A stretch of DNA of 64,000 nucleotides from Epithemia pelagica (Eukaryota > Protista > Bacillariophyta). The stretch lies in the NCBI GenBank assembly GCA_946965045.2, contig OX337236.1:2604001-2668000 (forward strand). The letters are read 5' to 3'. Numbering within the stretch: position 1 is the stretch's first letter; every line of letters starts with the position of its first letter. The position numbers and the translations under genes were made by a program. The notes beneath the pieces were generated by a model. The model did not search any database. It saw only the letters and a program-made list of their open reading frames with translations, and was not told the DNA's origin. This document shows, in pieces, positions 26,225 through 64,000 of the stretch.

Positions 26225-26243
26225 AGCAGTGAGACTGTTAATC
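26225..26243 (-). promoter_or_regulatory. Primer-binding site, apparently complementary to the anticodon arm of tRNA-Asn(GUU)
   Basis: GATTAACAGTCTCACTGCT immediately follows the 5' LTR. Its complement reads ...AGA-CT-GTT-AA-TC, an anticodon loop CUGUUAA closed by A31-U39 and G30-C40. There is no TGG (CCA-end) PBS. Confidence 0.65.
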
Positions 26244-44990: not shown

Positions 44991-47900
44991 TTACGACCCA
45001 TTCATGTAGATTGGGGAAACAGTAATATCCATGTTTTTCATTTCGATTGCAAAGTTCACACGACGATCGTAACTGAACGGTTCAATGTTACTGATCGTAA
45101 TCGTGAAGGACGTCTTCGTGGAGCTGGACGACGAAATAGACACGAAAACATCATTGGGTTCATAGGCGTCCATGTAATAGCTGTCATCGTCCCTCGTGCC
45201 GACACTAAAGCTGTCCAAATGCAATCGGGTGTAACCCACTGTCAACAGAAGAGTACCGGCTGGTCCACGTGACTTGTGCAAATCAAACTTGATGGTCAAC
45301 GTGGTTAACGACGGTGGGAGCACCACGGTTCGTCCGGCTTCAATGTCACGGGGAATCTTGATGAACTTCTTGCCATTCTCTTTAACGGTCTGAGCCAAGC
45401 CTAATGCGTCAATTTGGATGGGCATCCGCTCGGGTTCGGGTGTGGGACAGTACACGTCACAAGGATAGGCAAAGTCCAAACGATAACCCGATTCGTGGAA
45501 TGATTTCGGGTCAGGACATTTCATGGCCAGAGTACCTTCAATCACATCGCCGAAAAATTCATCAAAGGCATGAACGGTACCACGAGCGTAACCATCGGCA
45601 GCGCAATCAATAGTAAATTCATCCTTTAGTTCACCGTATGGGACGGCATGGTTGTCATGACAGTGCGGCGTACTCAAATAGTTGTCTGTGTAGTTCACAA
45701 GCATGCGACAGACACTGTTGGTCCACTCTTGTGCAACCTTCACCGTCACGGTAGTCGGTGTCTGTCGAATGAGTCGGACAGCACTGTGAGGAATAGGAGG
45801 TTTGGTCGTTCCCCAATCAATCTCCGCCGGACATCTACTTTCACAATTGGAACGGACTCGTACAGAATCCACATCCACAGTCAACGTTCCGACTTGCGTC
45901 TTGAATGCCAAAAAGAATACATCGGGGGTCTGGAAAAAGGACGATGGAACAGTCATTCCCACATGGCAGTGTGTAGTAGATGGATAACAGGATACGACAA
46001 CGCCGACATTTTCTGAAAATTGGCCAGAGAGATGGTCCTCTGAATCCCCGGGAGCAAAGGTGCCAATGCGGAAATCATGTTTACCCGCCATGACGATCAA
46101 ATCACCCGGCGCTTCTTTGGTAAAACTGAACTCAGCGGTAATACTCGAAGTTTTCTCGGGAAGGATGTAGGTCTGACCCACAATCTTGGTGCCGTAGTGA
46201 CTCAAGTATGTGGACCAATCACCGGCAGTCTTGGTAACCTCGGAACCACATGGTTCGTCCTCCTCAGGCTTGCAGGCCGGAGGTCCATACGAGCATGGCA
46301 AGGTAAAGACGTATTTGTGGGTATGGTCTGAATCAATCACGTGGCATTTTTCAGGGACATCAATATGATCTCCAGCCACGAGCTTCTCATCGTAAGCGAA
46401 AATGGTCACAGTCACCTTTCCATTTACGCATTGGGCTGTGTGCACTTCCGGTTCACCCGGTTCCACATTGGACGAATCAGCGCATGTTTCAACGATTCCG
46501 CCATGTTCCTTCTTATGATACAACACAGACAAGAGACAGAGAGTGTCATCCAGGAATTCTTGTTTCACCAAGAAAGTAACATCCGTGTGTCCATAGTCAA
46601 GAATGTAGATGGGAGGTTCCAAAGGATTGTGGGTGATGGAACTGGAGGGCTCCATTTGTTCCACGTACGGACATCCCTCACAGTAGGCATAGATGGACAC
46701 ATTGTCCACAACAAAATGACCGTCCTTAAACGAAAAGCCAAGGTAAAAGATATCGTCGAACATATCGGCGTCAACAAACATGGTCACATCACATTGACTT
46801 GTTGCGCTTCTGCTTCCAACAGTGCAGCTAACGCTCACTGGAACTTCATCGCCGAAAGTATATTCGAATGAGTTATCTCGTCCAATCGCGGCGAAATGAC
46901 CCATTTTCAAAGTAGGCTTTTTGCCAACTGAAACCATGAGGTCACCATCATGCTTCACGTCAAGTGTAAACTTCACACTCAAAGAGACACTGCTGGATGG
47001 TGGGATGTAAGTCCGGCTTGTGTAATTGTAGTGATTTGAAGACACAGTTGAGCTCCAATCTCGAATACTCCTTGTAACATCGTCGTCACAATCATAGTCC
47101 TCCGGCTCACAAATCGGTCGCATTTCCTCGCATGGGAACTCATAAATAAATCGCTGTATCTTATCACTCTCGGAAATGGACTTCATATCTGAACATTGGC
47201 CGTAGACATGATGATGTGTCGGGTTTTCAGGGAACATCGGTTCATACAGGAAAATTTCGATTTGAGCCATTCCTTGATAGCACTGGATCGTGTATTCAAA
47301 TGATTCGCCATGGGCCACTTCGTTTTGCTCGTCACACATGTGCTCATTCGGTTGAATCGGCTTGGTTGAATCGTATCGTTTGTAATATGCGGCGTACTTG
47401 CAAACAGGGTCATTCCACCACAATTGATCAACAGCTACAACCACAGCAGAGGAATTGTACGAAATGGCTTGAACTGGAATATCGTATTCGTGGGTCGCAA
47501 TATCAATGCTGTTATTTCCCGGAGGTGTGGCATCCTGAACGTACGGACAGACATCGGTAGGTGGCAGAGTTGGGACGGACGTTGGAACGCTGGTGGGTGT
47601 CAGTGTTGGGGCAGCTGTGGGTGCGTAACATTGGATATCCACGCTGAAATCTTTTATTCCGAGTGTTCCTTTTGGAATAACAATGAGAATACCGAATACA
47701 TCAGAAGGATAATGGTTGTGGGAAGACGAGAATACAAGAGTAAACTGGCGGATCACAACGTCAGAAATAGACTTCATATCCATCGTCTTCACATGATGAA
47801 TATGGACACCATTGTCAAGTAATTCGTTTTCTCGGTCTTCGTGATAGATTGGGATCTCAAAATTGCTTCCAGATAGTGTCATATTTGCGGGCCTTGATTC

Positions 47901-50900
47901 GTCCTTGTGTTCCAGTGTCATAAAACTGACTGTCACTTGTGCTGTATTTTTAGGAACTGATAGCGACCGATAAACGTGGATCGGCGAATTTCCAGCTATC
48001 ACCGCTGCGTCTATCTTATCGCCTTCATGCCCAAAACTTCCTGGGATCGCACCAATGTATTCTTCTACGCCATTTCCGTCTACCATGTCGTCAAACATAA
48101 TCTCGTGTACATTAACATCACTGCTTCTCGCAAGAACATCCACGCACTCTTCAAGTACTGGATACGGGCACCGTGGATTTTCAACACATTCAACCATGTA
48201 ACGGAAATGCTTGACATTGTCCGACGAGGATATCGCACACCCTTCTGGTGGATTGTGGTCGGCATCTTCACTGAATGATGAATCACGCACGTAGACATCG
48301 ATCTCGGCCATATCCTTCACACAGACAACAGTATATCTTCCCACGTGACCATACGGAGTGTCCATATTCGTACCCTTCTTCTCGTTATAACACTCACTTC
48401 CAACGCCAGATTCCTCATTACCTGGCAGGTAGGTCGCCAACTCTTCCACCGTCGGCGCCAAATACTGAAACACATCCAACATAATTTCGTTATTGCCAGC
48501 TGCCGCAATTTTGACGAGACTATACTCCTCCTCTGACGCGGATGATTCCATGTGCACCGAGTCGGGACAGAACTTGCTCGGGCTACTACTTGGCATCGAG
48601 CTGGGAGACAAACTTGGGCTAGCGCTCGGCGATGAACTTGGACTGGCACTGGGTAATGCACTCGGGGAAGTGCTCGGTGGAGAGCTTGGAGTGTAGCATT
48701 GCATTGATACATGCATAGACTCAATGCCCACAATTCCATGTGCAACGCGGAACCCGACTTTGAGGACATCATGTGGGTAATGATGAGGCTGGAAATGTAG
48801 CCAGATCTTTCGGGCGTAATAATCTTCTGTCCCCCAATGTAAGTCCTCCACCTTCAAATAAACTTTGTTCGGCAGTTCGACATCGGAGTCTCCTTGTGGA
48901 ATTTTAACACGAGAATGCTTGTCGTCCAAACTCACAATAATATGGTGTGGTCTATTTTCAATCTTTTCGACAATGACAATCTCCATTCCGACTGTTTCCG
49001 TCTTGGACGGTACCCAAATGTTCTTGAAAAGCCAATACGGTGCAGGGATCAGAACTAAATGCTTGCGATCACCAATCTCTCCAGCAACCCCGTCGAGATA
49101 GGAGTCCACATGCTCCTGTAGTTTCATGTCTTCGGACAAGATCACGCCATGGCCGTTCTCTTCATAGAACGAATCACAATCGGATGGACCCGGATGCTCG
49201 CAGAAGTCGTACAGCATACATGGTACTTTGTATGAGAACTTTTTGACCTGCTCGCCCGATGAGGGGATGATATTTTCACCGCTGCAGTCCTTAGGTATGT
49301 CATGGACAACCGAGGTATATGTCGTGTCAAAGGCATATATATCAAAGTACGCGTATCCATATTCATCACACTTTGCCGTATACCGATCAGAGCGACCATA
49401 TGGAACATTTGCACCACCGGTATGGCAGACTCTCGTCCCTCCAGAATGTTCTTCAAAGTCAATCATTAAACCGCAAAGCGAAGTTTTCTTTACATGTTGG
49501 TGGACTTCGACTGTGACAGTCTCTTTATCCCAGGCATAAATCGTAATGAGATTGTGGAATGGTGCTGCTTCAGGTTCTCCAAGGAAAATTGCACTGTATG
49601 GGCATGTGTCGAAGAAGAGTGAAGAAGGACTACTGCTCGGAGACAAGGAAGGACTGCTGCTGGGCGACGAACTCGGAGATTCACTGGGTGAATTAGATGG
49701 AGACTCGGACGGATGGACGCTATAGTCCGCAGTAGGTGCCAATGATGGATTGGAACTCGGAGAGCTACTTGGACTAGAGCTCGGACTTGAACTCGGCGAT
49801 TCACTGGGAGATTCGGAGGGAGCCTCACTGTCAGACACCGAGGGCGCAGTAGATGGCTCAGAGCTTGGAGACGAACTTGGTTCCGAACTCGGAGATGAAC
49901 TGGGAGATGCACTCGGTGACATACTCGGAGATGAACTCGGAAGAGCACTGGGTGATTCACTCGGATTAGAACTAGGAGCATAACATTGCAAGTCCATGCT
50001 GTAGCTCAAAATTCCAAATTGCCAGCCATCATGGTGAGTGAAAAACGTGATGGTTACAACATTGTGCTGGTAGAACCTGGGTGTCAAATATACTTCCAAA
50101 TGTAGGATATGATATCCCGTATGAGCGTTCTCTTCCTTGGTAAGACTTGCATGTAAACCATTCGAGTATGTCTTGGGATCGTGGAGATTCGTAATATCCC
50201 AAATTTCTTCGTCATTGGAGAAACTAAAACCAATACCTTCGTGTGCGTTAACATTCTTTACAATCAGACTGAAACGCGCGATCACAAGCTCCGTATAAGC
50301 TGGAATATGCACACTCTTGGCCACCATAGTATGGTTCTTCTTCAAAACAGCAACAGGATGAGTTCCCCACATGCCATGGTATGTGTTTACCCATGTATCC
50401 ACCTCAGCGTCACTATACATCGTACCCGAAGCAAAGGTTGTACCGTCCGAGTTGCTCGACAAGAAATCGTAACAATCCGGAACCTCCGGGTATGGACATC
50501 TGGGAGGGAGGTTACACGGAACTTTGTATGAAAACTTTTTGATCATAGACTTGTCTTTGTTCATGAACTTATCATGACAAGCTTTATGAATCGAATCGGA
50601 ATCAAGATAAAGATCTTTGAACGTAATATCCCACGCGTAAATATCAAACTTGGCAAATCCATCTTCGTCACATTTGGCTGTGTAATTGTCGTGATGACCA
50701 AAGCCAACATCCAATCCTCCATCTGCACAAACATATTGATCATCCAAGTCATGGTAATGTGTGAAAAAGGCACAAAGAGAACCCTCCTTCACATACTGGT
50801 GAACTCCTGCCGTAACACTCTGGTTGTTCCAGGCATAAATGGTGATCAAAATGTCCAACGGATAGGCATTGGAATGCTCAATAACATACTTCGCATCATA

Positions 50901-53900
50901 CGGACACTCTTCGGTAGGAGTGCTGCTCGGAGATGAACTGGGACTAGAGCTCGGAGATGTACTGGGAGAGGAGCTTGGTGAGCTGCTTGGCGAGGAACTA
51001 GGAGATGCGCTTGGTGAACTGCTTGGAGATGAGCTGGGAGATGCACTTGGTGACATACTCGGAGATGAACTCGGAAGAGCACTGGGTGATTCACTCGGAT
51101 TAGAACTAGGAGCATAACATTGCAAGTCCATGCTGTAGCTCAAAATTCCAAATTGCCAGCCATCATGGTGAGTGAAAAACGTGATGGTTACAACATTGTG
51201 CTGGTAGAACTTGGGTGTCAAATATACTTCCAAATGTAGGATATGATATCCCGTATGAGCGTTCTCTTCCTTGGTAAGACTTGCATGTAAACCATTCGAG
51301 TATGTCTTGGGATCGTGGAGATTCGTAATATCCCAAATTTCTTCGTCATTGGAGAAACTAAAACCAATACCTTCGTGTGCGTTAACATTCTTTACAATCA
51401 GACTGAAACGCGCGATCACAAGCTCCGTATAAGCTGGAATATGCACACTCTTGGCCACCATAGTATGGTTCTTCTTCAAAACAGCAACAGGATGAGTTGC
51501 CCACATGCCATGGTATGTGTTTACCCATGTATCCACCTCAGCGTCACTATACATCGTACCCGAAGCAAAGGTTGTACCGTCCGAGTTGCTCGACAAGAAA
51601 TCGTAACAATCCGGAACCTCCGGGTATGGACATCTGGGAGGGAGGTTACACGGAACTTTGTATGAAAACTTTTTGATCATAGACTTGTCTTTGTTCATGA
51701 ACTTATCATGACAAGCTTTATGAATCGAATCGGAATCAAGATAAAGATCTTTGAACGTAATATCCCACGCGTAAATATCAAACTTGGCAAATCCATCTTC
51801 GTCACATTTGGCTGTGTAATTGTCGTGATGACCAAAGCCAACATCCAATCCTCCATCTGCACAAACATATTGATCATCCAAGTCATGGTAATGTGTGAAA
51901 AAGGCACAAAGAGAACCCTCCTTCACATACTGGTGAACTCCTGCCGTAACACTCTGGTTGTTCCAGGCATAAATGGTGATCAAAATGTCCAACGGATAGG
52001 CATTGGAATGCTCAATAACATACTTCGCATCATACGGACACTCTTCGGTAGGAGTGCTGCTCGGAGATGAACTGGGACTAGAGCTCGGAGATGTACTGGG
52101 AGAGGAGCTTGGTGAGCTGCTTGGCGAGGAACTAGGAGATGCGCTTGGTGAACTGCTTGGAGATGAGCTGGGAGATGCACTTGGTGACATACTCGGAGAT
52201 GAACTCGGAAGAGCACTGGGTGATTCACTCGGATTAGAACTAGGAGCATAACATTGCAAGTCCATGCTGTAGCTCAAAATTCCAAATTGCCAGCCATCAT
52301 GGTGAGTGAAAAACGTGATGGTTACAACATTGTGCTGGTAGAACTTGGGTGTCAAATATACTTCCAAATGTAGGATATGATATCCCGTATGAGCGTTCTC
52401 TTCCTTGGTAAGACTTGCATGTAAACCATTCGAGTATGTCTTGGGATCGTGGAGATTCGTAATATCCCAAATTTCTTCGTCATTGGAGAAACTAAAACCA
52501 ATACCTTCGTGTGCGTTAACATTCTTTACAATCAGACTGAAACGCGCGATCACAAGCTCCGTATAAGCTGGAATATGCACACTCTTGGCCACCATAGTAT
52601 GGTTCTTCTTCAAAACAGCAACAGGATGAGTTGCCCACATGCCATGGTATGTGTTTACCCATGTATCCACCTCAGCGTCACTATACATCGTACCCGAAGC
52701 AAAGGTTGTACCGTCCGAGTTGCTCGACAAGAAATCGTAACAATCCGGAACCTCCGGGTATGGACATCTGGGAGGGAGGTTACACGGAACTTTGTATGAA
52801 AACTTTTTGATCATAGACTTGTCTTTGTTCATGAACTTATCATGACAAGCTTTATGAATCGAATCGGAATCAAGATAAAGATCTTTGAACGTAATATCCC
52901 ACGCGTAAATATCAAACTTGGCAAATCCATCTTCGTCACATTTGGCTGTGTAATTGTCGTGATGACCAAAGCCAACATCCAATCCTCCATCTGCACAAAC
53001 ATATTGATCATCCAAGTCATGGTAATGTGTGAAAAAGGCACAAAGAGAACCCTCCTTCACATACTGGTGAACTCCTGCCGTAACACTCTGGTTGTTCCAG
53101 GCATAAATGGTGATCAAAATGTCCAACGGATAGGCATTGGAATGCTCAATAACATACTTCGCATCATACGGACACTCTTCGGTAGGAGTGCTGCTCGGAG
53201 ATGAACTGGGACTAGAGCTCGGAGATGTACTGGGAGAGGAGCTTGGTGAGCTGCTTGGCGAGGAACTAGGAGATGCGCTTGGTGAACTGCTTGGAGATGA
53301 GCTGGGAGATGCACTTGGTGACATACTCGGAGATGAACTCGGAAGAGCACTGGGTGATTCACTCGGATTAGAACTAGGAGCATAACATTGCAAGTCCATG
53401 CTGTAGCTCAAAATTCCAAATTGCCAGCCATCATGGTGAGTGAAAAACGTGATGGTTACAACATTGTGCTGGTAGAACTTGGGTGTCAAATATACTTCCA
53501 AATGTAGGATATGATATCCCGTATGAGCGTTCTCTTCCTTGGTAAGACTTGCATGTAAACCATTCGAGTATGTCTTGGGATCGTGGAGATTCGTAATATC
53601 CCAAATTTCTTCGTCATTGGAGAAACTAAAACCAATACCTTCGTGTGCGTTAACATTCTTTACAATCAGACTGAAACGCGCGATCACAAGCTCCGTATAA
53701 GCTGGAATATGCACACTCTTGGCCACCATAGTATGATTCTTCTTCAAAACAGCAACAGGATGAGTTCCCCACATGCCATGGTATGTGTTTACCCATGTAT
53801 CCACCTCAGCGTCACTATACATCGTACCCGAAGCAAAGGTTGTACCGTCCGAGTTGCTCGACAAGAAATCGTAACAATCCGGAACCTCCGGGTATGGACA

Positions 53901-56900
53901 TCTGGGAGGGAGGTTACACGGAACTTTGTATGAAAACTTTTTGATCATAGACTTGTCTTTGTTCATGAACTTATCATGACAAGCTTTATGAATCGAATCG
54001 GAATCAAGATAAAGATCTTTGAACGTAATATCCCACGCGTAAATATCAAACTTGGCAAATCCATCTTCGTCACATTTGGCTGTGTAATTGTCGTGATGAC
54101 CAAAGCCAACATCCAATCCTCCATCTGCACAAACATATTGATCATCCAAGTCATGGTAATGTGTGAAAAAGGCACAAAGAGAACCCTCCTTCACATACTG
54201 GTGAACTCCTGCCGTAACACTCTGGTTGTTCCAGGCATAAATGGGGATCAAAATGTCCAACGGATAGGCATTGGAATGCTCAATAACATACTTCGCATCA
54301 TACGGACACTCTTCGGTAGGAGTGCTGCTCGGAGATGAACTGGGACTAGAGCTCGGCGATGTACTGGGAGAGGAGCTTGGTGAGCTGCTTGGCGAGGAAC
54401 TAGGAGATGCGCTTGGTGAACTGCTTGGAGATGAGCTGGGAGAGGAACTAGGTGAACTACTCGGAGAGGAACTCGGAGCAGAGCTGGGTGATTCACTAGG
54501 ACTTGAACTGGGTGAGGTGCTGGGTGAAGAGCTAGGATTCGCACTGGAATACGATGGTTTCCAGCTCGGCGATGAACTAGGCACAGCGCTTGGACTCTCA
54601 CTTGGCGAAGAACTAGGGCTTTCACTTGGCGAAGAACTCGGACTTTCACTCGGAGAAGAACTGGGGTTCGAACTAGGGGACGAGCTGGGAACAGCACTGG
54701 GAGAAGAGCTGGGACTCGAACTCGGATCCGAACTTGGTGCTGAAGACGGCTCACTACTTGGAGATTCAGATGGACTTTCACTTGGAGATGCCGATGGGGA
54801 TTCAGACGGATGATCACTTGCAGTGATTGTAGGTTGGTTTGATGGCGAGCTACTCGGGGACTCTGATGGATGGACACTTGCCGTGATTGTTGGTGACATC
54901 GATGGCGAACTACTGGGACTGGAACTCGGAGATGCACTTGGAGAAGAACTCGGAGATGCACTGGGAGAAGAGCTCGGAGATGCCGAAGGTGAAGAACTAG
55001 GCAACGAAGACGGACTTGCACTTGGACTGCTGCTTGGACTGCTGCTCGGTTCTGAACTCGACGTCATTGATGGAGGAGACGAAGGCTCAGAACTTGGACT
55101 GAAGCTAGGCGATGAACTAGGGTTGAAACTGGGCTCTGAGCTTGGTGATGCACTGGGACTTGCACTCGGCGACGAACTCGGTGACGAACTGGGAGAACTG
55201 CTTGGTGATGAAGATGGCTCAGAGCTTGGAGACGAACTTGGTTCCGAACTCGGAGATGAACTGGGAGATGCACTCGGTGACATACTCGGAGATGAACTCG
55301 GAAGAGCACTGGGTGATTCACTCGGATTAGAACTAGGAGCATAACATTGCAAGTCCATGCTGTAGCTCAAAATTCCAAATTGCCATCCGTCATGGTGTGC
55401 GAAAAACGTGATGGTAACAACATTCTCCTGGTAGAACTTGGGTGTCAAATATACTTCCAAATGTAGGATATGATATCCCTCAGGGACGTTCTCTTCCTTG
55501 GTAAGACTTGCATGTAAACCATTCGAGTATGTCTTGGGATCGTGGAGATTCGTAATATCCCAAATTTCTTCGTCATTGGAGAAACTAAAACCAATACCTT
55601 CGTGTGCGTTAACATTCTTTACAATCAGACTGAAACGCGCGATCACAAGCTCCGTATAAGCTGGAATATGCACACTCTTGGCCACCATAGTATGGTTCTT
55701 CTTCAAAACAGCAACAGGATAAGTTCCCCACATGCCATGGTATGTGTTTACCCATGTATCCACCTCAGCGTCACTATACATCGTACCCGAAGCAAAGGTT
55801 GTACCGTCCGAGTTGCTCGACAAGAAATCGTAACAATCCGGAACCTCCGGGTATGGACATCTGGGAGGGAGGTTACACGGAACTTTGTATGAAAACTTTT
55901 TGATCATAGACTTGTCTTTGTTCATGAACTTATCATGACAAGCTTTATGAATCGAATCGGAATCAAGATAAAGATCTTTGAACGTAATATCCCACGCGTA
56001 AATATCAAACTTGGCAAATCCATCTTCGTCACATTTGGCAGTGTAATTGTCGTGATGACCAAAGCCAACATCCAATCCTCCATCTGCACAAACATATTGA
56101 TCATCCAAGTCATGGTAATGTGTGAAAAAGGCACAAAGAGAACCCTCCTTCACATACTGGTGAACTCCTGCCGTAACACTCTGGTTGTTCCAGGCATAAA
56201 TGGTGATCAAAATGTCCAACGGATAGGCATTGGAATGCTCAATAACATACTTCGCATCATACGGACACTCTTCGGTAGGAGTGCTGCTCGGAGATGAACT
56301 GGGACTAGAGCTCGGCGATGTACTGGGAGAGGAGCTTGGTGAGCTGCTTGGCGAGGAACTAGGAGATGCGCTAGGTGAGCTGCTGGGTGAGGAACTAGGC
56401 GATTCACTTGGCGAGCTACTCGGAGAGGAACTGGGAGATGTGCTGGGCGAGCTGCTGGGAGCTGAACTGGGAGATTCACTTGGTGATGCACTTGGACTAG
56501 CACTTGGCTCCGAGCTCGGCGACTCACTAGGATTCTCACTGGAATACGACGGCTTCCAGCTTGGAGAGGAACTTGGACTCGAACTTGGTGAAGAACTTGG
56601 ACTAGCACTCGGAGAAGAACTGGGACTTTCACTCGGAGACGAGCTTGGTTCTGAGCTGGGCGACGAGCTGGGAACGGAACTCGGAGAAGCACTTGGACTA
56701 GAACTAGGACTCGAACTCGGTGCTGAAGACGGCTCACTACTTGGAGACTCAGATGGACTGGAACTCGGAGAGGCCGAAGGGGACTCAGACGGATGAACAC
56801 TTGCAGTGATTGTAGGTGACATCGATGGCGAACTACTTGGAGACTCTGATGGATGAACACTTGCAGTGATTGTAGGTGACATCGATGGCGAACTACTGGG

Positions 56901-59900
56901 ACTGGAACTCGGAGATGCACTAGGAGAAGAACTCGGAGATGCACTGGGAGAACTGCTCGGGGATGAAGATGGCTCGGAGCTTGGACCACTACTTGGAGAT
57001 GAACTTGGTGAAGCACTTGGGGACAAACTCGGGGATGAACTTGGTTCCGAACTTGGGGATGAACTGGGAGATGCACTCGGTGACATACTCGGGGATGAAC
57101 TCGGAAGAGCACTGGGTGATTCACTCGGATTAGAACTAGGAGCATAACATTGCAAGTCCATGCTGTAGCTCAAAATTCCAAATTGCCATCCGTCATGATG
57201 TGCGAAAAACGTGATGGTTACAACATTCTCCTTGTAGAACTTGGGTGTCAAATATACTTCCAAATGTAGGATATGATATCCCGTATGAGCGTTCTCTTCC
57301 TTGGTAAGACTTGCATGTAAACCATTCGAGTATGTCTTGGGATCGTGGAGATTCGTAATATCCCAAATTTCATTGAGATTGTCGTAACTAAAACCAATAC
57401 CTTCGTGTGCGTTAACATTCTTTACAATCAGACTGAAACGCGCGATCACAAGCTCCGTATAAGCTGGAATATGCACACTCTTGGCCACCATAGTATGGTT
57501 CTTCTTCAAAACAGCAACAGGATGAGTTCCCCACATGCCATGGTATGTGTTTACCCATGTATCCACCTCAGCGTCACTATACATCGTACCCGAAGCAAAG
57601 GTTGTACCGTCCGAGTTGCTCGACAAGAAATCGTAACAATCCGGAACCTCCGGGTATGGACATCTGGGAGGGAGGTTACACGGAACTTTGTATGAAAACT
57701 TTTTGATCATAGACTTGTCTTTGTTCATGAACTTATCATGACAAGCTTTATGAATCGAATCGGAATCAAGATAAAGATCTTTGAACGTAATATCCCACGC
57801 GTAAATATCAAACTTGGCAAATCCATCTTCGTCACATTTGGCTGTGTAATTGTCGTGATGACCAAAGCCAACATCCAATCCTCCATCTGCACAAACATAT
57901 TGATCATCCAAGTCATGGTAATGTGTGAAAAAGGCACAAAGAGAACCCTCCTTCACATACTGGTGAACTCCTGCCGTAACACTCTGGTTGTTCCAGGCAT
58001 AAATGGTGATCAAAATGTCCAACGGATAGGCATTGGAATGCTCAATAACATACTTCGCATCATACGGACACTCTTCGGTAGGAGTGCTGCTCGGAGATGA
58101 ACTGGGACTAGAGCTCGGCGATGTACTGGGAGAGGAGCTTGGTGAGCTGCTTGGCGAGGAACTAGGAGATGCGCTAGGTGAGCTGCTGGGTGAGGAACTA
58201 GGCGATTCACTTGGCGAGCTACTCGGAGAGGAACTGGGAGATGTGCTGGGCGAGCTGCTGGGAGCTGAACTGGGAGATGTACTTGGTGATGCACTTGGAC
58301 TAGCACTTGGCTCTGAGCTCGGAGACTCACTAGGATTCCCACTGGAATACGATGGCTTCCAGCTTGGAGAGGAACTTGGACTCGAACTTGGTGAACCACT
58401 TGGGGAGGCACTTGGAGCTGAACTTGGAGAAGAACTTGGACTAGCACTTGGCTCTGAGCTTGGAGACAAACTTGGTCTTGCACTTGGTGAAGAACTTGGA
58501 CTAGCACTCGGAGAAGAACTGGGACTTTCACTCGGAGACGAGCTCGGTTCTGAGCTGGGCGACGAGCTGGGAACGGAACTCGGAGAAGCACTTGGACTAG
58601 AACTAGGACTCGAACTCGGTGAAGAAGATGGTTCAGCACTCGGAGACTCAGATGGACTGGAACTCGGAGAGGCCGAAGGGGACTCAGACGGATGAACACT
58701 TGCAGTGATTGTAGGTGACATCGATGGCGAACTACTTGGAGACTCTGATGGATGAACACTTGCAGTGATTGTAGGTGACATCGATGGCGAACTACTTGGA
58801 CTGGAACTTGGAGATTCACTAGGAGAAGAACTCGGAGATGCACTGGGAGAACTGCTCGGAGATGAAGATGGCTCGGAGCTTGGACTACTACTTGGAGATG
58901 AACTTGGTGAAGCACTTGGGGACAAACTCGGGGATGAACTTGGTTCCGAACTTGGGGATGAACTGGGAGATGCACTCGGTGACATACTCGGAGATGAACT
59001 CGGAAGAGCACTGGGTGATTCACTCGGATTAGAACTAGGAGCATAACATTGCAAGTCCATGCTGTAGCTCAAAATTCCAAATTGCCATCCGTCATGATGT
59101 GCGAAAAACGTGATGGTTACAACATTGTGCTGGTAGAACTTGGGTGTCAAATATACTTCCAAATGTAGGATATGATATCCCGTATGAGCGTTGTCTTCCT
59201 TGGTAAGACTTGCATGTAAACCATTCGAGTATGTCTTGGGATCGTGGAGATTCGTAATATCCCAAATTTCTTCGTCATTGGAGAAACTAAAACCAATACC
59301 TTCGTGTGCGTAAACATTCTTTACAATCAGACTGAAACGCGCGATCACAAGCTCCGTATAAGCTGGAATATGCACACTCTTGGCCACCATAGTATGATTC
59401 TTCTTCAAAACAGCAACAGGATGAGTTCCCCACATGCCATGGTATGTGTTTACCCATGTATCCACCTCAGCGTCACTATACATCGTACCCGAAGCAAAGG
59501 TTGTACCGTCCGAGTTGCTCGACAAGAAATCGTAACAATCCGGAACCTCCGGGTATGGACATCTGGGAGGGAGGTTACACGGAACTTTGTATGAAAACTT
59601 TTTGATCATAGACTTGTCTTTGTTCATGAACTTATCATGACAAGCTTTATGAATCGAATCGGAATCAAGATAAAGATCTTTGAACGTAATATCCCACGCG
59701 TAAATATCAAACTTGGCAAATCCATCTTCGTCACATTTGGCTGTGTAATTGTCGTGATGACCAAAGCCAACATCCAATCCTCCATCTGCACAAACATATT
59801 GATCATCCAAGTCATGGTAATGTGTGAAAAAGGCACAAAGAGAACCCTCCTTCACATACTGGTGAACTCCTGCCGTAACACTCTGGTTGTTCCAGGCATA

Positions 59901-62900
59901 AATGGTGATCAAAATGTCCAACGGATAGGCATTGGAATGCTCAATAACATACTTCGCATCATACGGACACTCTTCGGTAGGAGTGCTGCTCGGAGATGAA
60001 CTGGGACTGGAGCTCGGCGATGTACTGGGAGAGGAGCTTGGTGAGCTGCTTGGCGAGGAACTAGGAGATGCGCTAGGTGAGCTGCTGGGTGAGGAACTAG
60101 GCGATTCACTTGGCGAGCTACTCGGAGAGGAACTGGGAGATGTGCTGGGCGAGCTGCTGGGAGCTGAACTGGGAGATTCACTTGGTGATGCACTTGGACT
60201 TGCACTTGGCTCTGAGCTCGGCGACGCACTGGGATTCTCACTGGAATACGATGGCTTCCAGCTTGGAGAGGAACTTGGACTCGAACTTGGTGAACCACTT
60301 GGGGAGGCACTTGGAGCTGAACTTGGAGAAGAACTTGGACTAGCACTTGGCTCTGAGCTTGGAGACAAACTTGGACTTGAACTTGGTGAAGAACTTGGAC
60401 TAGCACTCGGAGAAGAACTGGGACTTTCACTCGGAGACGAGCTCGGTTCTGAGCTGGGCGACGAGCTGGGAACGGAACTCGGAGAAGCACTTGGACTAGA
60501 ACTAGGACTCGAACTCGGTGAAGAAGATGGTTCAGCACTCGGAGACTCAGATGGACTGGAACTCGGAGAGGCCGAAGGGGACTCAGACGGATGAACACTT
60601 GCAGTGATTGTAGGTGACATCGATGGCGAACTACTTGGAGACTCTGATGGATGAACACTTGCAGTGATTGTGGGTGACATCGATGGCGAACTACTTGGAC
60701 TGGAACTTGGAGATTCACTAGGAGAAGAACTCGGAGATGCACTGGGAGAACTGCTCGGAGATGAAGATGGCTCGGAGCTTGGACTACTACTTGGAGATGA
60801 ACTTGGTGAAGCACTTGGGGACAAACTCGGGGATGAACTTGGTTCCGAACTTGGGGATGAACTGGGAGATGCACTCGGCGTCGATGAGGGACTTTCACTT
60901 GGACTGTTGCTGGGACTGCTGCTCGGTTCGGAACTCGCTATTACTGAAGGAGAAGAGGAAGGCTCGGAACTCGGACTTGAGCTGGGAGAAGAACTCGGGC
61001 TTGAGCTCGGCCCTGCACTTGGTGATTCGCTAGGGTTTTCACTCGGGGAAGAACTGGGGGATGAACTGGGGGTTGAACTTGGTGATTCACTTGGAGCTAA
61101 ACTGGGGGACGAGCTGGGAGAAGAACTCGGAGAAGAACTTGGCGAGTTGCTGGGTGAGGAACTAGGCGATTCACTTGGCGAGCTACTCGGAGTTGAACTG
61201 GGAGATGTGCTGGGCGAGCTGCTCGGAGCTGAACTGGGAGATGCACTTGGTGATGCACTTGGACTTGCACTTGGCTCTGAGCTCGGCGACGCACTAGGAT
61301 TCTCACTGGAATACGATGGCTTCCAGCTTGGAGAGGAACTTGGACTCGAACTTGGTGAACCACTTGGGGAGGCACTTGGAGCTGAACTTGGAGAAGAACT
61401 AGGAGAAGAACTTGGCTCTGAGCTCGGAGACAAACTTGGTCTTGCACTTGGTGAAGAACTTGGACTAGCACTCGGAGAAGAACTGGGACTTTCACTCGGA
61501 GACGAGCTCGGTTCTGAGCTGGGCGACGAGCTGGGAACGGAACTCGGAGAAGCACTTGGACTAGAACTAGGACTCGAACTCGGTGAAGAAGATGGTTCAG
61601 CACTAGGAGACTCAGATGGACTGGAACTCGGAGAGGCCGAAGGGGACTCAGACGGATGAACACTTGCAGTGATTGTAGGTGACATCGATGGCGAACTACT
61701 TGGAGACTCTGATGGATGAACACTTGCAGTGATTGTAGGTGACATCGATGGCGAACTACTTGGACTGGAACTTGGAGATTCACTAGGAAAAGAACTCGGA
61801 GATGCACTGGGAGAACTGCTCGGAGATGAAGATGGCTCGGAGCTTGGACTACTACTTGGAGATGAACTTGGTGAAGCACTTGGGGACAAACTCGGGGATG
61901 AACTTGGTTCCGAACTTGGGGATGAACTGGGAGATGCACTCGGTGACATACTCGGAGATGAACTCGGAAGAGCACTGGGTGATTCACTCGGATTAGAACT
62001 AGGAGCATAACATTGCAAGTCCATGCTGTAGCTCAAAATTCCAAATTGCCATCCGTCATGATGTGCGAAAAACGTGATGGTTACAACATTCTCCTTGTAG
62101 AACTTGGGTGTCAAATATACTTCCAAATGTAGGATATGATATCCCTCAGGGACGTTCTCTTCCTTGGTAAGACTTGCATGTAAACCATTCGAGTATGTCT
62201 TGGGATCGTGGAGATTCGTAATATCCCAAATTTCTTCGTCATTGGAGAAACTAAAACCAATACCTTCGTGTGCGTTAACATTCTTTACAATCAGACTGAA
62301 ACGCGCGATCACAAGCTCCGTATAAGCTGGAATATGCACACTCTTGGCCACCATAGTATGGTTCTTCTTCAAAACAGCAACAGGATGAGTTCCCCACATG
62401 CCATGGTATGTGTTTACCCATGTATCCACCTCAGCGTCACTATACATCGTACCCGAAGCAAAGGTTGTACCGTCCGAGTTGCTCGACAAGAAATCGTAAC
62501 AATCCGGAACCTCCGGGTATGGACATCTGGGAGGGAGGTTACACGGAACTTTGTATGAAAACTTTTTGATCATAGACTTGTCTTTGTTCATGAACTTATC
62601 ATGACAAGCTTTATGAATCGAATCGGAATCAAGATAAAGATCTTTGAACGTAATATCCCACGCGTAAATATCAAACTTGGCAAATCCATCTTCGTCACAT
62701 TTGGCTGTGTAATTGTCGTGATGACCAAAGCCAACATCCAATCCTCCATCTGCACAAACATATTGATCATCCAAGTCATGGTAATGTGTGAAAAAGGCAC
62801 AAAGAGAACCCTCCTTCACATACTGGTGAACTCCTGCCGTAACACTCTGGTTGTTCCAGGCATAAATGGTGATCAAAATGTCCAACGGATAAGCATTGGA

Positions 62901-64000
62901 ATGCTCAATAACATACTTCGCATCATACGGACACTCTTCGGTAGGAGTGCTGCTCGGAGATGAACTGGGACTAGAGCTCGGCGATGTACTGGGAGAGGAG
63001 CTTGGTGAGCTGCTTGGCGAGGAACTAGGAGATGCGCTAGGTGAGCTGCTGGGTGAGGAACTAGGCGATTCACTTGGCGAGCTACTCGGAGAGGAACTGG
63101 GAGATGTGCTGGGCGAGCTGCTAGGAGCTGAACTGGGAGATGCACTTGGTGATGCACTTGGACTTGCACTTGGCTCTGAGCTCGGCGACGCACTGGGATT
63201 CTCACTGGAATACGATGGCTTCCAGCTTGGAGAGGAACTTGGACTCGAACTTGGTGAACCACTTGGGGAGGCACTTGGAGCTGAACTTGGAGAAGAACTA
63301 GGAGAAGAACTTGGCTCTGAGCTCGGAGACAAACTTGGACTTGAACTTGGTGAAGAACTTGGACTAGCACTCGGAGAAGAACTGGGACTTTCACTCGGAG
63401 ACGAGCTCGGTTCTGAGCTGGGCGACGAGCTGGGAACGGAACTCGGAGAAGCACTTGGACTAGAACTAGGACTCGAACTCGGTGAAGAAGATGGTTCAGC
63501 ACTCGGAGACTCAGATGGACTGGAACTCGGAGAGGCCGAAGGGGACTCAGACGGATGAACACTTGCAGTGATTGTAGGTGTCATCGATGGCGAACTACTT
63601 GGAGACTCTGATGGGTGAACACTTGCAGTGATTGTAGGTGACATCGATGGCGAACTACTTGGACTGGAACTAGGAGATTCACTAGGAGAAGAACTCGGAG
63701 ATGCACTGGGAGAACTGCTCGGAGATGAAGATGGCTCGGAGCTTGGACTACTACTTGGAGATGAACTTGGTGAAGCACTTGGGGACAAACTCGGGGATGA
63801 ACTTGGTTCCGAACTTGGGGATGAACTGGGAGATGCACTCGGCGTCGATGAGGGACTTTCACTTGGACTGTTGCTGGGACTGCTGCTCGGTTCGGAACTC
63901 GCTGTTACTGAAGGAGAAGAGGAAGGCTCGGAACTCGGACTTGAGCTGGGAGAAGAACTCGGGCTTGAGCTCGGCCCTGCACTTGGTGATTCGCTAGGGT
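44991..64000 (-). CDS. Giant repetitive extracellular-type protein (over 6265 aa, 5'-truncated by the window edge): Ser-Pro linkers plus 13 Cys-rich A-B domain pairs
   Basis: Single uninterrupted frame from the window end to TAA at 44991. The track's start at 63788 is a TTG inside an open frame. Eight near-identical 311-aa modules plus five divergent C-terminal ones. Confidence 0.9.
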   Translation of the reverse strand, partial: PSESPSAGPSSSPSSSPSSSPSSEPSSSPSVTASSEPSSSPSNSPSESPSSTPSASPSSSPSSEPSSSPSLSPSASPSSSPSSSPSSEPSSSPSSSPSASPSSSPSESPSSSPSSSPSMSPTITASVHPSESPSSSPSMTPTITASVHPSESPSASPSSSPSESPSAEPSSSPSSSPSSSPSASPSSVPSSSPSSEPSSSPSESPSSSPSASPSSSPSSSPSLSPSSEPSSSPSSSPSSAPSASPSGSPSSSPSSSPSWKPSYSSENPSASPSSEPSASPSASPSASPSSAPSSSPSTSPSSSPSSSPSESPSSSPSSSPSASPSSSPSSSPSSSPSTSPSSSPSSSPSSTPTEECPYDAKYVIEHSNAYPLDILITIYAWNNQSVTAGVHQYVKEGSLCAFFTHYHDLDDQYVCADGGLDVGFGHHDNYTAKCDEDGFAKFDIYAWDITFKDLYLDSDSIHKACHDKFMNKDKSMIKKFSYKVPCNLPPRCPYPEVPDCYDFLSSNSDGTTFASGTMYSDAEVDTWVNTYHGMWGTHPVAVLKKNHTMVAKSVHIPAYTELVIARFSLIVKNVNAHEGIGFSFSNDEEIWDITNLHDPKTYSNGLHASLTKEENVPEGYHILHLEVYLTPKFYKENVVTITFFAHHDGWQFGILSYSMDLQCYAPSSNPSESPSALPSSSPSMSPSASPSSSPSSEPSSSPSLSPSASPSSSPSSSPSSEPSSSPSSSPSASPSSFPSESPSSSPSSSPSMSPTITASVHPSESPSSSPSMSPTITASVHPSESPSASPSSSPSESPSAEPSSSPSSSPSSSPSASPSSVPSSSPSSEPSSSPSESPSSSPSASPSSSPSARPSLSPSSEPSSSPSSSPSSAPSASPSGSPSSSPSSSPSWKPSYSSENPSASPSSEPSASPSASPSASPSSAPSSSPSTSPSSTPSSSPSESPSSSPSNSPSSSPSSSPSSSPSLAPSESPSSTPSSSPSSSPSENPSESPSAGPSSSPSSSPSSSPSSEPSSSPSVIASSEPSSSPSNSPSESPSSTPSASPSSSPSSEPSSSPSLSPSASPSSSPSSSPSSEPSSSPSSSPSASPSSSPSESPSSSPSSSPSMSPTITASVHPSESPSSSPSMSPTITASVHPSESPSASPSSSPSESPSAEPSSSPSSSPSSSPSASPSSVPSSSPSSEPSSSPSESPSSSPSASPSSSPSSSPSLSPSSEPSASPSSSPSSAPSASPSGSPSSSPSSSPSWKPSYSSENPSASPSSEPSASPSASPSESPSSAPSSSPSTSPSSSPSSSPSESPSSSPSSSPSASPSSSPSSSPSSSPSTSPSSSPSSSPSSTPTEECPYDAKYVIEHSNAYPLDILITIYAWNNQSVTAGVHQYVKEGSLCAFFTHYHDLDDQYVCADGGLDVGFGHHDNYTAKCDEDGFAKFDIYAWDITFKDLYLDSDSIHKACHDKFMNKDKSMIKKFSYKVPCNLPPRCPYPEVPDCYDFLSSNSDGTTFASGTMYSDAEVDTWVNTYHGMWGTHPVAVLKKNHTMVAKSVHIPAYTELVIARFSLIVKNVYAHEGIGFSFSNDEEIWDITNLHDPKTYSNGLHASLTKEDNAHTGYHILHLEVYLTPKFYQHNVVTITFFAHHDGWQFGILSYSMDLQCYAPSSNPSESPSALPSSSPSMSPSASPSSSPSSEPSSSPSLSPSASPSSSPSSSPSSEPSSSPSSSPSASPSSSPSESPSSSPSSSPSMSPTITASVHPSESPSSSPSMSPTITASVHPSESPSASPSSSPSESPSAEPSSSPSSSPSSSPSASPSSVPSSSPSSEPSSSPSESPSSSPSASPSSSPSARPSLSPSSEPSASPSSSPSSAPSASPSGSPSSSPSSSPSWKPSYSSGNPSESPSSEPSASPSASPSTSPSSAPSSSPSTSPSSSPSSSPSESPSSSPSSSPSASPSSSPSSSPSSSPSTSPSSSPSSSPSSTPTEECPYDAKYVIEHSNAYPLDILITIYAWNNQSVTAGVHQYVKEGSLCAFFTHYHDLDDQYVCADGGLDVGFGHHDNYTAKCDEDGFAKFDIYAWDITFKDLYLDSDSIHKACHDKFMNKDKSMIKKFSYKVPCNLPPRCPYPEVPDCYDFLSSNSDGTTFASGTMYSDAEVDTWVNTYHGMWGTHPVAVLKKNHTMVAKSVHIPAYTELVIARFSLIVKNVNAHEGIGFSYDNLNEIWDITNLHDPKTYSNGLHASLTKEENAHTGYHILHLEVYLTPKFYKENVVTITFFAHHDGWQFGILSYSMDLQCYAPSSNPSESPSALPSSSPSMSPSASPSSSPSSEPSSSPSLSPSASPSSSPSSGPSSEPSSSPSSSPSASPSSSPSASPSSSPSSSPSMSPTITASVHPSESPSSSPSMSPTITASVHPSESPSASPSSSPSESPSSEPSSAPSSSPSSSPSASPSSVPSSSPSSEPSSSPSESPSSSPSASPSSSPSSSPSSSPSWKPSYSSENPSESPSSEPSASPSASPSESPSSAPSSSPSTSPSSSPSSSPSESPSSSPSSSPSASPSSSPSSSPSSSPSTSPSSSPSSSPSSTPTEECPYDAKYVIEHSNAYPLDILITIYAWNNQSVTAGVHQYVKEGSLCAFFTHYHDLDDQYVCADGGLDVGFGHHDNYTAKCDEDGFAKFDIYAWDITFKDLYLDSDSIHKACHDKFMNKDKSMIKKFSYKVPCNLPPRCPYPEVPDCYDFLSSNSDGTTFASGTMYSDAEVDTWVNTYHGMWGTYPVAVLKKNHTMVAKSVHIPAYTELVIARFSLIVKNVNAHEGIGFSFSNDEEIWDITNLHDPKTYSNGLHASLTKEENVPEGYHILHLEVYLTPKFYQENVVTITFFAHHDGWQFGILSYSMDLQCYAPSSNPSESPSALPSSSPSMSPSASPSSSPSSEPSSSPSSEPSSSPSSSPSSSPSSSPSASPSASPSSEPSFNPSSSPSFSPSSEPSSPPSMTSSSEPSSSPSSSPSASPSSLPSSSPSASPSSSPSASPSSSPSASPSSSPSSSPSMSPTITASVHPSESPSSSPSNQPTITASDHPSESPSASPSESPSESPSSEPSSAPSSDPSSSPSSSPSAVPSSSPSSNPSSSPSESPSSSPSESPSSSPSESPSAVPSSSPSWKPSYSSANPSSSPSTSPSSSPSESPSSAPSSSPSSSPSSSPSSSPSSSPSASPSSSPSSSPSSSPSTSPSSSPSSSPSSTPTEECPYDAKYVIEHSNAYPLDILIPIYAWNNQSVTAGVHQYVKEGSLCAFFTHYHDLDDQYVCADGGLDVGFGHHDNYTAKCDEDGFAKFDIYAWDITFKDLYLDSDSIHKACHDKFMNKDKSMIKKFSYKVPCNLPPRCPYPEVPDCYDFLSSNSDGTTFASGTMYSDAEVDTWVNTYHGMWGTHPVAVLKKNHTMVAKSVHIPAYTELVIARFSLIVKNVNAHEGIGFSFSNDEEIWDITNLHDPKTYSNGLHASLTKEENAHTGYHILHLEVYLTPKFYQHNVVTITFFTHHDGWQFGILSYSMDLQCYAPSSNPSESPSALPSSSPSMSPSASPSSSPSSSPSASPSSSPSSSPSSSPSTSPSSSPSSSPSSTPTEECPYDAKYVIEHSNAYPLDILITIYAWNNQSVTAGVHQYVKEGSLCAFFTHYHDLDDQYVCADGGLDVGFGHHDNYTAKCDEDGFAKFDIYAWDITFKDLYLDSDSIHKACHDKFMNKDKSMIKKFSYKVPCNLPPRCPYPEVPDCYDFLSSNSDGTTFASGTMYSDAEVDTWVNTYHGMWATHPVAVLKKNHTMVAKSVHIPAYTELVIARFSLIVKNVNAHEGIGFSFSNDEEIWDITNLHDPKTYSNGLHASLTKEENAHTGYHILHLEVYLTPKFYQHNVVTITFFTHHDGWQFGILSYSMDLQCYAPSSNPSESPSALPSSSPSMSPSASPSSSPSSSPSASPSSSPSSSPSSSPSTSPSSSPSSSPSSTPTEECPYDAKYVIEHSNAYPLDILITIYAWNNQSVTAGVHQYVKEGSLCAFFTHYHDLDDQYVCADGGLDVGFGHHDNYTAKCDEDGFAKFDIYAWDITFKDLYLDSDSIHKACHDKFMNKDKSMIKKFSYKVPCNLPPRCPYPEVPDCYDFLSSNSDGTTFASGTMYSDAEVDTWVNTYHGMWATHPVAVLKKNHTMVAKSVHIPAYTELVIARFSLIVKNVNAHEGIGFSFSNDEEIWDITNLHDPKTYSNGLHASLTKEENAHTGYHILHLEVYLTPKFYQHNVVTITFFTHHDGWQFGILSYSMDLQCYAPSSNPSESPSALPSSSPSMSPSASPSSSPSSSPSASPSSSPSSSPSSSPSTSPSSSPSSSPSSTPTEECPYDAKYVIEHSNAYPLDILITIYAWNNQSVTAGVHQYVKEGSLCAFFTHYHDLDDQYVCADGGLDVGFGHHDNYTAKCDEDGFAKFDIYAWDITFKDLYLDSDSIHKACHDKFMNKDKSMIKKFSYKVPCNLPPRCPYPEVPDCYDFLSSNSDGTTFASGTMYSDAEVDTWVNTYHGMWGTHPVAVLKKNHTMVAKSVHIPAYTELVIARFSLIVKNVNAHEGIGFSFSNDEEIWDITNLHDPKTYSNGLHASLTKEENAHTGYHILHLEVYLTPRFYQHNVVTITFFTHHDGWQFGILSYSMDLQCYAPSSNPSESPSALPSSSPSMSPSASPSSSPSSEPSSSPSSEPSTAPSVSDSEAPSESPSESPSSSPSSSPSSSPSSNPSLAPTADYSVHPSESPSNSPSESPSSSPSSSPSLSPSSSPSSLFFDTCPYSAIFLGEPEAAPFHNLITIYAWDKETVTVEVHQHVKKTSLCGLMIDFEEHSGGTRVCHTGGANVPYGRSDRYTAKCDEYGYAYFDIYAFDTTYTSVVHDIPKDCSGENIIPSSGEQVKKFSYKVPCMLYDFCEHPGPSDCDSFYEENGHGVILSEDMKLQEHVDSYLDGVAGEIGDRKHLVLIPAPYWLFKNIWVPSKTETVGMEIVIVEKIENRPHHIIVSLDDKHSRVKIPQGDSDVELPNKVYLKVEDLHWGTEDYYARKIWLHFQPHHYPHDVLKVGFRVAHGIVGIESMHVSMQCYTPSSPPSTSPSALPSASPSSSPSASPSLSPSSMPSSSPSKFCPDSVHMESSASEEEYSLVKIAAAGNNEIMLDVFQYLAPTVEELATYLPGNEESGVGSECYNEKKGTNMDTPYGHVGRYTVVCVKDMAEIDVYVRDSSFSEDADHNPPEGCAISSSDNVKHFRYMVECVENPRCPYPVLEECVDVLARSSDVNVHEIMFDDMVDGNGVEEYIGAIPGSFGHEGDKIDAAVIAGNSPIHVYRSLSVPKNTAQVTVSFMTLEHKDESRPANMTLSGSNFEIPIYHEDRENELLDNGVHIHHVKTMDMKSISDVVIRQFTLVFSSSHNHYPSDVFGILIVIPKGTLGIKDFSVDIQCYAPTAAPTLTPTSVPTSVPTLPPTDVCPYVQDATPPGNNSIDIATHEYDIPVQAISYNSSAVVVAVDQLWWNDPVCKYAAYYKRYDSTKPIQPNEHMCDEQNEVAHGESFEYTIQCYQGMAQIEIFLYEPMFPENPTHHHVYGQCSDMKSISESDKIQRFIYEFPCEEMRPICEPEDYDCDDDVTRSIRDWSSTVSSNHYNYTSRTYIPPSSSVSLSVKFTLDVKHDGDLMVSVGKKPTLKMGHFAAIGRDNSFEYTFGDEVPVSVSCTVGSRSATSQCDVTMFVDADMFDDIFYLGFSFKDGHFVVDNVSIYAYCEGCPYVEQMEPSSSITHNPLEPPIYILDYGHTDVTFLVKQEFLDDTLCLLSVLYHKKEHGGIVETCADSSNVEPGEPEVHTAQCVNGKVTVTIFAYDEKLVAGDHIDVPEKCHVIDSDHTHKYVFTLPCSYGPPACKPEEDEPCGSEVTKTAGDWSTYLSHYGTKIVGQTYILPEKTSSITAEFSFTKEAPGDLIVMAGKHDFRIGTFAPGDSEDHLSGQFSENVGVVVSCYPSTTHCHVGMTVPSSFFQTPDVFFLAFKTQVGTLTVDVDSVRVRSNCESRCPAEIDWGTTKPPIPHSAVRLIRQTPTTVTVKVAQEWTNSVCRMLVNYTDNYLSTPHCHDNHAVPYGELKDEFTIDCAADGYARGTVHAFDEFFGDVIEGTLAMKCPDPKSFHESGYRLDFAYPCDVYCPTPEPERMPIQIDALGLAQTVKENGKKFIKIPRDIEAGRTVVLPPSLTTLTIKFDLHKSRGPAGTLLLTVGYTRLHLDSFSVGTRDDDSYYMDAYEPNDVFVSISSSSSTKTSFTITISNIEPFSYDRRVNFAIEMKNMDITVSPIYMNGS
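49974..62933 (-). repeat. Eight near-identical 933-bp coding modules (49974-50906, 51108-52040, 52242-53174, 53376-54308, 55335-56267, 57138-58070, 59037-59969, 62001-62933)
   Basis: CPYDAK...LQCYAP module. Periods 1134, 1134, 1134, 1959, 1803, 1899 and 2964 bp, read from the repeated antisense ORFs in the track. Confidence 0.95.

Follow-up and report, generated by a model that had tools for sequence, protein, structure and literature searches.

A giant gene of alternating A-B modules and P-S-x-x linkers in Epithemia pelagica: a candidate adhesive or mucilage strand protein of a diatom

We analysed a window of 64,000 nt from Epithemia pelagica, probably a raphid pennate diatom (contig C9, C9:2604001-2668000), and found that it holds most of a single-exon gene for an 8,039-aa protein, in which pairs of cysteine-rich domains, A and B, alternate with linkers built of the tetrapeptide P-S-x-x. 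By analogy with known diatom extracellular proteins, we favour with moderate confidence the reading that this giant protein is exported and serves, heavily O-glycosylated, as a strand of adhesive or mucilage. Positions given without a contig name refer to the whole window, the adjoining 10 kb are called L011, and the other members of the family were located by a six-frame search of the assembly (60.5 Mb in 23 contigs).

Structure of the giant gene and its export signal

The giant gene lies on the minus strand and its open frame crosses positions 44994-64000 without interruption. The initial annotation had described this frame as more than 19 kb of continuous coding sequence, and that part of its gene description stands; it did not state the strand, and the gene is longer than the stretch it was given. 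In the genome search the frame extends 5.1 kb past the window end, to C9:2673167, and comprises 8,058 open codons, with a stop upstream of it at position 69168-69170 of the extended window. Codon 20 of the frame supplies the first Met (L011:6108-6110, minus strand), which gives a protein of 8,039 aa encoded by an intron-free frame of 24 kb.

From this Met the protein reads MLKVAAAILMSLGGAAAAAG followed by HADHH. This N-terminal segment combines a basic residue with a hydrophobic core some 15 residues long, and its residues at -3 and -1 are small. From these classical features we infer a signal peptide, and the segment is the sole 19-aa window of the giant protein with a mean Kyte-Doolittle value above 1.6. 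The initial annotation had proposed to look for the start and the signal peptide by extending the sequence and had named the lack of a signal peptide as a refutation of its reading; a signal-peptide-like N-terminus is indeed present 5.1 kb beyond the window. It had also seen no transmembrane (TM) segment or glycosylphosphatidylinositol (GPI) tail, and a hydropathy scan of the full protein agrees, since no TM or GPI-like hydrophobic segment was detected beyond the N-terminal one. The mature chain would have about 8,019 residues, a mass of about 835 kDa for the polypeptide alone, a pI of 4.7 and 128 Cys.

The modules, delimited by their Ser and Pro content and by Cys positions, are numbered m1 to m14 from the N-terminus. 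The features of the gene are listed below from 5' to 3', where CDS stands for coding sequence.

L011:1001-6110, minus strand: rest of the 5' CDS with the ATG and the putative signal peptide, outside the window
44994-64000, minus strand: C-terminal 6,335 of the 8,039 codons, single-exon CDS
62940-64000, minus strand: portion of the 1,502-aa m1-m2 linker that falls inside the window
62001-62939, minus strand: m2, the homogenised A-B pair nearest the N-terminus, used for modelling (A about 62505-62939, B about 62001-62504)
59976-62000, minus strand: 675-aa linker containing two cassettes, in each of which WKPSYSS occurs once and PTITASVHPS twice
59037-59975, minus strand: m3, homogenised A-B pair
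58077-59036, minus strand: 320-aa linker
57138-58076, minus strand: m4, homogenised A-B pair
56274-57137, minus strand: 288-aa linker
55335-56273, minus strand: m5, homogenised A-B pair
54315-55334, minus strand: 340-aa linker
53376-54314, minus strand: m6, homogenised A-B pair
53181-53375, 52047-52241 and 50913-51107, minus strand: three equivalent 65-aa linkers
52242-53180, minus strand: m7, homogenised A-B pair, identical to m8 in DNA
51108-52046, minus strand: m8, homogenised A-B pair
49974-50912, minus strand: m9, homogenised A-B pair
49611-49973, minus strand: 121-aa linker between m9 and m10
48687-49610, minus strand: m10, divergent A-B pair, 32% identity to m2, DUF7633 score of 15.4 bits, below the cut-off
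48576-48686, minus strand: 37-aa linker
47619-48575, minus strand: m11, divergent A-B pair without the second conserved Cys
47556-47618, minus strand: 21-aa linker
46674-47555, minus strand: m12, divergent A-B pair with a short B and 11 Cys
45834-46679, minus strand: m13, divergent A-B pair whose closest match is a contig-10 paralog module (33%)
44994-45839, minus strand: m14, C-terminal A-B pair, its A domain above the DUF7633 cut-off
44991-44993, minus strand: stop codon

Sequence and predicted structure of the A-B modules

The 13 alternating A-B pairs that had been counted in the window were recovered, and m1, upstream of it, brings the total of the giant protein to 14. Eight modules (m2-m9) are nearly identical, with 97-100% protein identity and 0 to 17 differences in 939 nt; m1 and m10-m14 show 16-32% identity to them and among themselves. 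An alignment of the modules of the giant protein and its paralogs retains as invariant columns Cys3, Pro4, Val37, Gln39, Cys62, Gly72, Cys81, Cys112, Cys133, Cys139 and Pro204. In most modules the number of Cys is nine; being odd, it hints at a free or intermolecular cysteine.

The AlphaFold2 model of m2, built from 35 sequences, reached a mean predicted local distance difference test (pLDDT) score of 87.7 and a predicted template modelling (pTM) score of 0.84, and it supersedes a poor model from 10 sequences (pLDDT 66) together with the Foldseek matches of the latter. Module A, seen within this model at residues ~20-135, has seven strands and one helix, and module B, at residues ~150-313, forms a beta sandwich. 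As modelled, module A is a beta-rich domain of the DUF7633 family, its fold class being taken from the DSSP strand pattern, and module B is predicted to be a beta jelly roll of the carbohydrate-binding-module (CBM) type. The structure matches of module B were spread over many jelly-roll families at 4-12% identity, and because none of them stood out only the fold class of B is established. The fold is shared with CBM22, CBM35, CBM6, CBM4, CBM27 and the porphyran- and alginate-binding CBMs, without sequence similarity or a Pfam CBM match, and Eph ligand-binding domains, reelin repeats and toxin receptor-binding domains score nearly as high. Unlike CBMs, module B has Cys residues near its two ends that clamp it, and it is invariably preceded by an A domain.

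The initial annotation recognised no named Pfam domain, which holds for module B (no family at E values up to 10) and not for module A. The A domain of m14 scores 29.1 bits against Pfam DUF7633 (PF24636), or 30.2 bits in the six-frame genome search, against a gathering cut-off of 27; the family is also matched by a copy in a paralog (28.7 bits) and by several relatives from the protein search described below, among them P0019 (46.5 bits). The Pfam model misses most copies of module A, including all eight homogenised ones: no match was reported for m2-m9 in the Pfam scan, and m10 reached just 15.4 bits. What ties m2-m9 to the family is the module alignment together with the profile search. The function of DUF7633 is unknown, and no mention of it was found in a literature search. 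A search of PDB sequences with the module gave nothing below an E value of 0.69, and the ESM Atlas matches of the whole module, with scores up to 0.81 to unnamed bacterial clusters, were rejected as noise.

The P-S-x-x linkers

The linkers total 3,748 aa, 47% of the giant protein, and contain about 940 tetrapeptides. The Ser-Pro linkers with punctuation motifs of the initial annotation can be defined more exactly as a strict P-S-x-x repeat: 822 of 895 prolines are followed by the next Pro at +4, and in 825 of 831 repeats Pro has Ser as its direct successor. S, A or E predominates at the third position and S at the fourth, whereas Lys and Arg are nearly absent from the linkers, which would hide them from peptide proteomics. 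The linkers draw on the whole set of codons for both main residues, six for Ser and four for Pro, so the tetrapeptide period is maintained at the protein level and an origin as a simple DNA microsatellite is ruled out. The linkers shorten along the chain: from the N- to the C-terminus they measure 1,502, 675, 320, 288, 340, 65, 65, 65, 121, 37 and 21 aa, and no linker separates m12, m13 and m14.

Two punctuation motifs recur in the full protein, WKPSYSS (10 copies) and PTITASVHPS (15 copies), and they are organised in a higher-order cassette with one copy of the former and two of the latter. Aligned 283-aa stretches of the cassettes are ~99% identical in DNA. PTITASVHPS preserves the register of the linker (Pro spacing of 8), and WKPSYSS is the sole recurrent element that shifts it, by one residue (Pro spacing of 7), which gives exactly one register shift per cassette of about 355 aa. 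Tandem Repeats Finder reported no array, because the repeat periods of 1.1-1.9 kb exceed its 500-base limit.

Relatives, paralogs and selection

A search of 1.84 billion representative proteins with a profile built from ten diverse modules detected 606 relatives at E<=1e-3, of which 255 were found at E<=1e-10. Among the best 150 of the 606, about 90 are arrays of A domains only (A-A, A-A-A or longer) and about 45 have at least one A-B pair; many of these 150 have linkers with a period-4 Pro, and three have a TM-like segment. The named relatives come from Mayamaea pseudoterrestris (three), Seminavis robusta (one) and Pseudo-nitzschia multiseries (one). All of them are raphid pennate diatoms, in a small sample (30 relatives were looked up and few had an organism name) that is too small to show absence from centric diatoms. 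The Seminavis robusta protein CAB9511440.1 (P0035), with four A domains, is annotated as 'AHNAK nucleoprotein', probably a mis-annotation driven by its repeats. Word-index protein searches returned two near-self gene models from another assembly and two unnamed Joint Genome Institute (JGI) proteins, few matches because the module family is too divergent for this type of search.

In the E. pelagica genome the module family is limited to three genes, together with short fragments. The first is the giant gene itself. The second is a tandem paralog of 4,716 open codons on the same strand, about 2 kb upstream of the giant gene (C9:2675209-2689356, minus strand); it shares its signal peptide and N-terminal module with the giant gene and contains three homogenised modules plus an additional m12-like module. 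The third lies on contig 10 (C10:1153100-1163743, minus strand). Its 3,548 open codons specify linkers of the P-T-x-x (GPT/SPT) type, three modules of A alone and four A-B pairs, and the 5' end of its open frame showed neither a clear start nor a clear signal peptide. The fragments, at C3:54067-55317 and C13:170703-171890, resemble homogenised modules (46-63% identity) and some have internal stops, so that their sequence marks them as probable pseudogene debris of the family.

The last modules keep a position-specific identity across the paralogs. The nearest counterpart of m13 is one contig-10 module (33%), and that of m14 is the final module of that gene (29%). Over the C-terminal 1,539 codons of the giant gene and the tandem paralog, the proportions of synonymous (pS) and nonsynonymous (pN) differences are 0.041 and 0.013. 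Because this gives a pN/pS of 0.32, both genes are under purifying selection, including the divergent C-terminal modules.

Comparison with known diatom extracellular proteins

Eight proteins were found in the adhesive trails of Craspedostauros australis, whose adhesive is ~70% carbohydrate with 17% dihydroxyproline (Zackova Suchanova et al. 2023, 10.1101/2023.03.06.531300). In that study, CaTrailin4 and Ca5609 exceed 1 MDa, are 70% and 50% rich in Pro, Thr and Ser (PTS), contain identical six-Cys repeats named DUF1 and DUF2, respectively, and were proposed to be glycosylated elastic strands of at least 1 micrometre that reach from the plasma membrane to the substratum. [quoted passage not shown] The giant protein likewise has a signal-peptide-like start, is about half PTS-rich, shows identical Cys repeats that interrupt the PTS regions and is encoded by a giant intron-free gene. 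The two differ in their linkers, which are PTGD-rich in Ca5609 and P-S-x-x in the giant protein, and a B-type jelly roll is described in the latter alone; Ca5609 was identified by trail proteomics, whereas the E. pelagica protein is known here from its gene alone.

Compared by eye, DUF2 of Ca5609 and the N-terminus of Ca5255 share with module A the order of Cys, the strands '...V-x-F-x-V...W' and '...T-A-Q-C' and the closing aromatic-x-V-(P/E)-C, which in DUF2 is followed by another Cys a few residues later. Thus DUF7633 may be the repeat of two Craspedostauros trail proteins.

CaTrailin4 is encoded by an intron-free gene of 28,951 bp (10.1101/2023.03.06.531300) and resembles the giant gene in this respect, in its PTS-rich composition with interspersed Cys repeats and in the O-glycosylated elastic strand proposed for its product. 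Trailins are defined by the CAA domain (PF20597), and none was detected in Pfam scans of the modules and C-terminus of the giant gene; the three matches in the genome are on contigs 3 and 13 only. The giant gene is therefore not a Trailin.

The linkers have a structural precedent in the TLP-4 glycofibril, a linear P-S/T-x-x chain resolved by cryo-electron microscopy with a rise of 12.4 A per repeat, in which each repeat bears two glycans on dihydroxyproline and one on the neighbouring Ser or Thr (Wang et al. 2024, PMC11725842). Long P-S/T-x-x runs of this type reach 1,502 aa in the giant protein. PSxx proteins are common in diatoms, for example Nitzschia inconspicua KAG7367681.1, and the longest one listed has 667 repeats (PMC11725842), compared with about 940 in the giant protein. 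The TLP-4 chain, the protein identity of which is unknown, is continuous, whereas the rods of the giant protein would be segmented by beads and by the register-shifting WKPSYSS.

Cys-rich domains that alternate with O-glycosylatable regions of Pro, Ser and Thr are also a feature of two other types of secreted protein, animal gel-forming mucins and CaFAP1, a cell-surface glycoprotein of C. australis with alternating PTS-rich and Cys-rich domains and 23% PTS (10.1101/2023.03.06.531300). The repeat of the giant protein is a strict tetrapeptide, whereas theirs is an irregular PTS tract. No vWD, C8, TIL or cystine-knot domains were detected in Pfam scans of the giant-protein modules, and without vWD or cystine-knot domains an animal-type mucin is ruled out.

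Neighbouring sequence

Directly downstream of the giant gene and on the same strand (40717-43614, minus strand) lies a gene whose 965-aa product contains a thioredoxin domain (E 4.5e-14) and, at 32.3 bits with a cut-off of 27.6, an Erv1/ALR domain. A QSOX-like secretory sulfhydryl oxidase thus may adjoin the gene of a secreted protein with 128 Cys, an arrangement that may be a coincidence. Positions 26001-34000 show a strong GC skew of 0.41-0.54 and a G+C content raised to 0.50-0.56.

Possible function of the giant protein

The adhesive or mucilage role suggested in the initial annotation is plausible by analogy with the Craspedostauros trail proteins and with repeats of the TLP-4 type. Under this proposal, the P-S-x-x runs would be densely O-glycosylated, probably on hydroxylated Pro and on Ser, and would form stiff rods like TLP-4; at 1.24 nm per repeat, the rods would sum to ~1.0-1.2 micrometres. 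The A-B beads would be disulfide-stabilised nodes, and the lectin-like B domains may bind polysaccharide, whether that of the mucilage, that of adjacent strands or that of the substratum. In adhesive trails, in pads or in surface mucilage, the molecule would then serve both as a long tether and as a cross-linker. Saw-tooth curves recorded on diatom adhesive by atomic force microscopy (AFM) have been attributed to modular proteins (reviewed in PMC3821603), and eight identical beads could give the regular saw-tooth mechanics reported for these 'adhesive modular proteins'.

Several points weigh against a role as an adhesive or mucilage strand. The giant protein is represented here by sequence data only. 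Module B matches no single jelly-roll family and conserved sugar-binding residues were not seen, so that glycan binding is a guess at the level of the fold. The likeness that links module A with Ca5609 DUF2 and with the N-terminus of Ca5255 was judged by eye. Finally, 23 of the 30 variable sites among m2-m9 change the amino acid, and these modules show no purifying signal of their own, a pattern that very recent duplication or gene conversion would give.

It is also conceivable, and in our judgement unlikely, that the giant protein forms a mucin-like coat at the cell surface or on the frustule, which would serve to lubricate or shield the wall and would be shed without bearing load. CaFAP1, with its alternation of PTS-rich and Cys-rich domains at the cell surface, is the precedent for such a coat, and the giant protein has no recognised adhesion domain and its gene no CAA domain. 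On the other side, no wall-anchoring or silica-associated motif was seen in the giant protein, and micrometre rods with repeated identical beads are closer to Ca5609 and CaTrailin4 than to CaFAP1 with its 23% PTS. The roles of coat and adhesive strand are not mutually exclusive.

There is only a slim chance that the giant protein is a metal-binding scaffold, in which the His/Asp clusters of the beads would chelate ions for cross-linking or sequestration. The clusters themselves, pointed out in the initial annotation, are real: THYHDLDD, GHHDNY and HHDGW occur eight times each in the full protein, and the 313 aa of a homogenised module include 19 His and 27 Asp. In the contig-10 paralog, one B domain (L016:6502-7533, L016 being part of that locus) also has a His-rich insert of about 40 aa of the H-x-N-H-G-D type. 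Against this, the clusters are not conserved at the aligned positions of m1, m10-m14 or the paralog modules, and no invariant column of the module alignment is His, Asp or Glu. Since they are confined to the eight homogenised copies, the clusters are a trait of one young module lineage and not of the family, and metal binding as a family trait is not upheld.

That the locus is an assembly artefact of collapsed or expanded tandem repeats, or a dead array, is extremely unlikely: modules and linker cassettes that are 98-100% identical in DNA are error-prone for assemblers and the copy number could be off, but 24 kb without a stop cannot be chance, pN/pS between the paralogs is 0.32, both tandem paralogs have kept the start and the signal peptide, an independent public assembly gives gene models 96-98% identical to the C-terminal parts, and the contig measures 3.6 Mb in an assembly of 23.

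Implications for diatom adhesion

Giant PTS-rich modular proteins of the diatom extracellular matrix, PSxx candidates for glycofibrils, module A as a Pfam domain of unknown function and hundreds of its uncharacterised relatives were already known. New here are the full 8,039-aa model with its paralogs and the predicted CBM-like fold of domain B, the partner that belongs to no family; it is also proposed for the first time, from the comparison by eye, that DUF7633 may be the same as repeats in two trail proteins known from proteomics.

An adhesive or mucilage strand would be of interest because diatom underwater adhesion and gliding rely on secreted strands, the protein parts of which are known from two species only. 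Genes for giant strands are hard to assemble, and the model of Ca5609 is still split. The E. pelagica locus supplies a complete contiguous model, with start, signal-peptide-like segment and stop, as well as a tandem paralog and a third member. The CBM fold modelled for B, a frequent partner of DUF7633, suggests protein-glycan cross-linking, and the linkers belong to the exact tetrapeptide class of the TLP-4 glycofibril.

A more far-reaching proposal, which we consider quite unlikely, is that the P-S-x-x segments are true glycofibrils of the TLP-4 class. They would form rods of set length (cassettes of ~110 nm with one WKPSYSS shift each) joined by lectin-like beads, and B would recognise the glycan shell of neighbouring rods, leading to self-assembled nanofibres of 'adhesive modular protein'. 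If true, the giant gene would be the first complete genetic blueprint of a TLP-4-class glycofibril and would provide a gene-level account of the saw-tooth force curves, which have lacked one since 2005. The three leads given above, on DUF7633, on the fold of B and on the tetrapeptide class of the linkers, connect the formerly separate strands of trail proteomics, CryoSeek glycofibrils and the 'modular proteins' of AFM.

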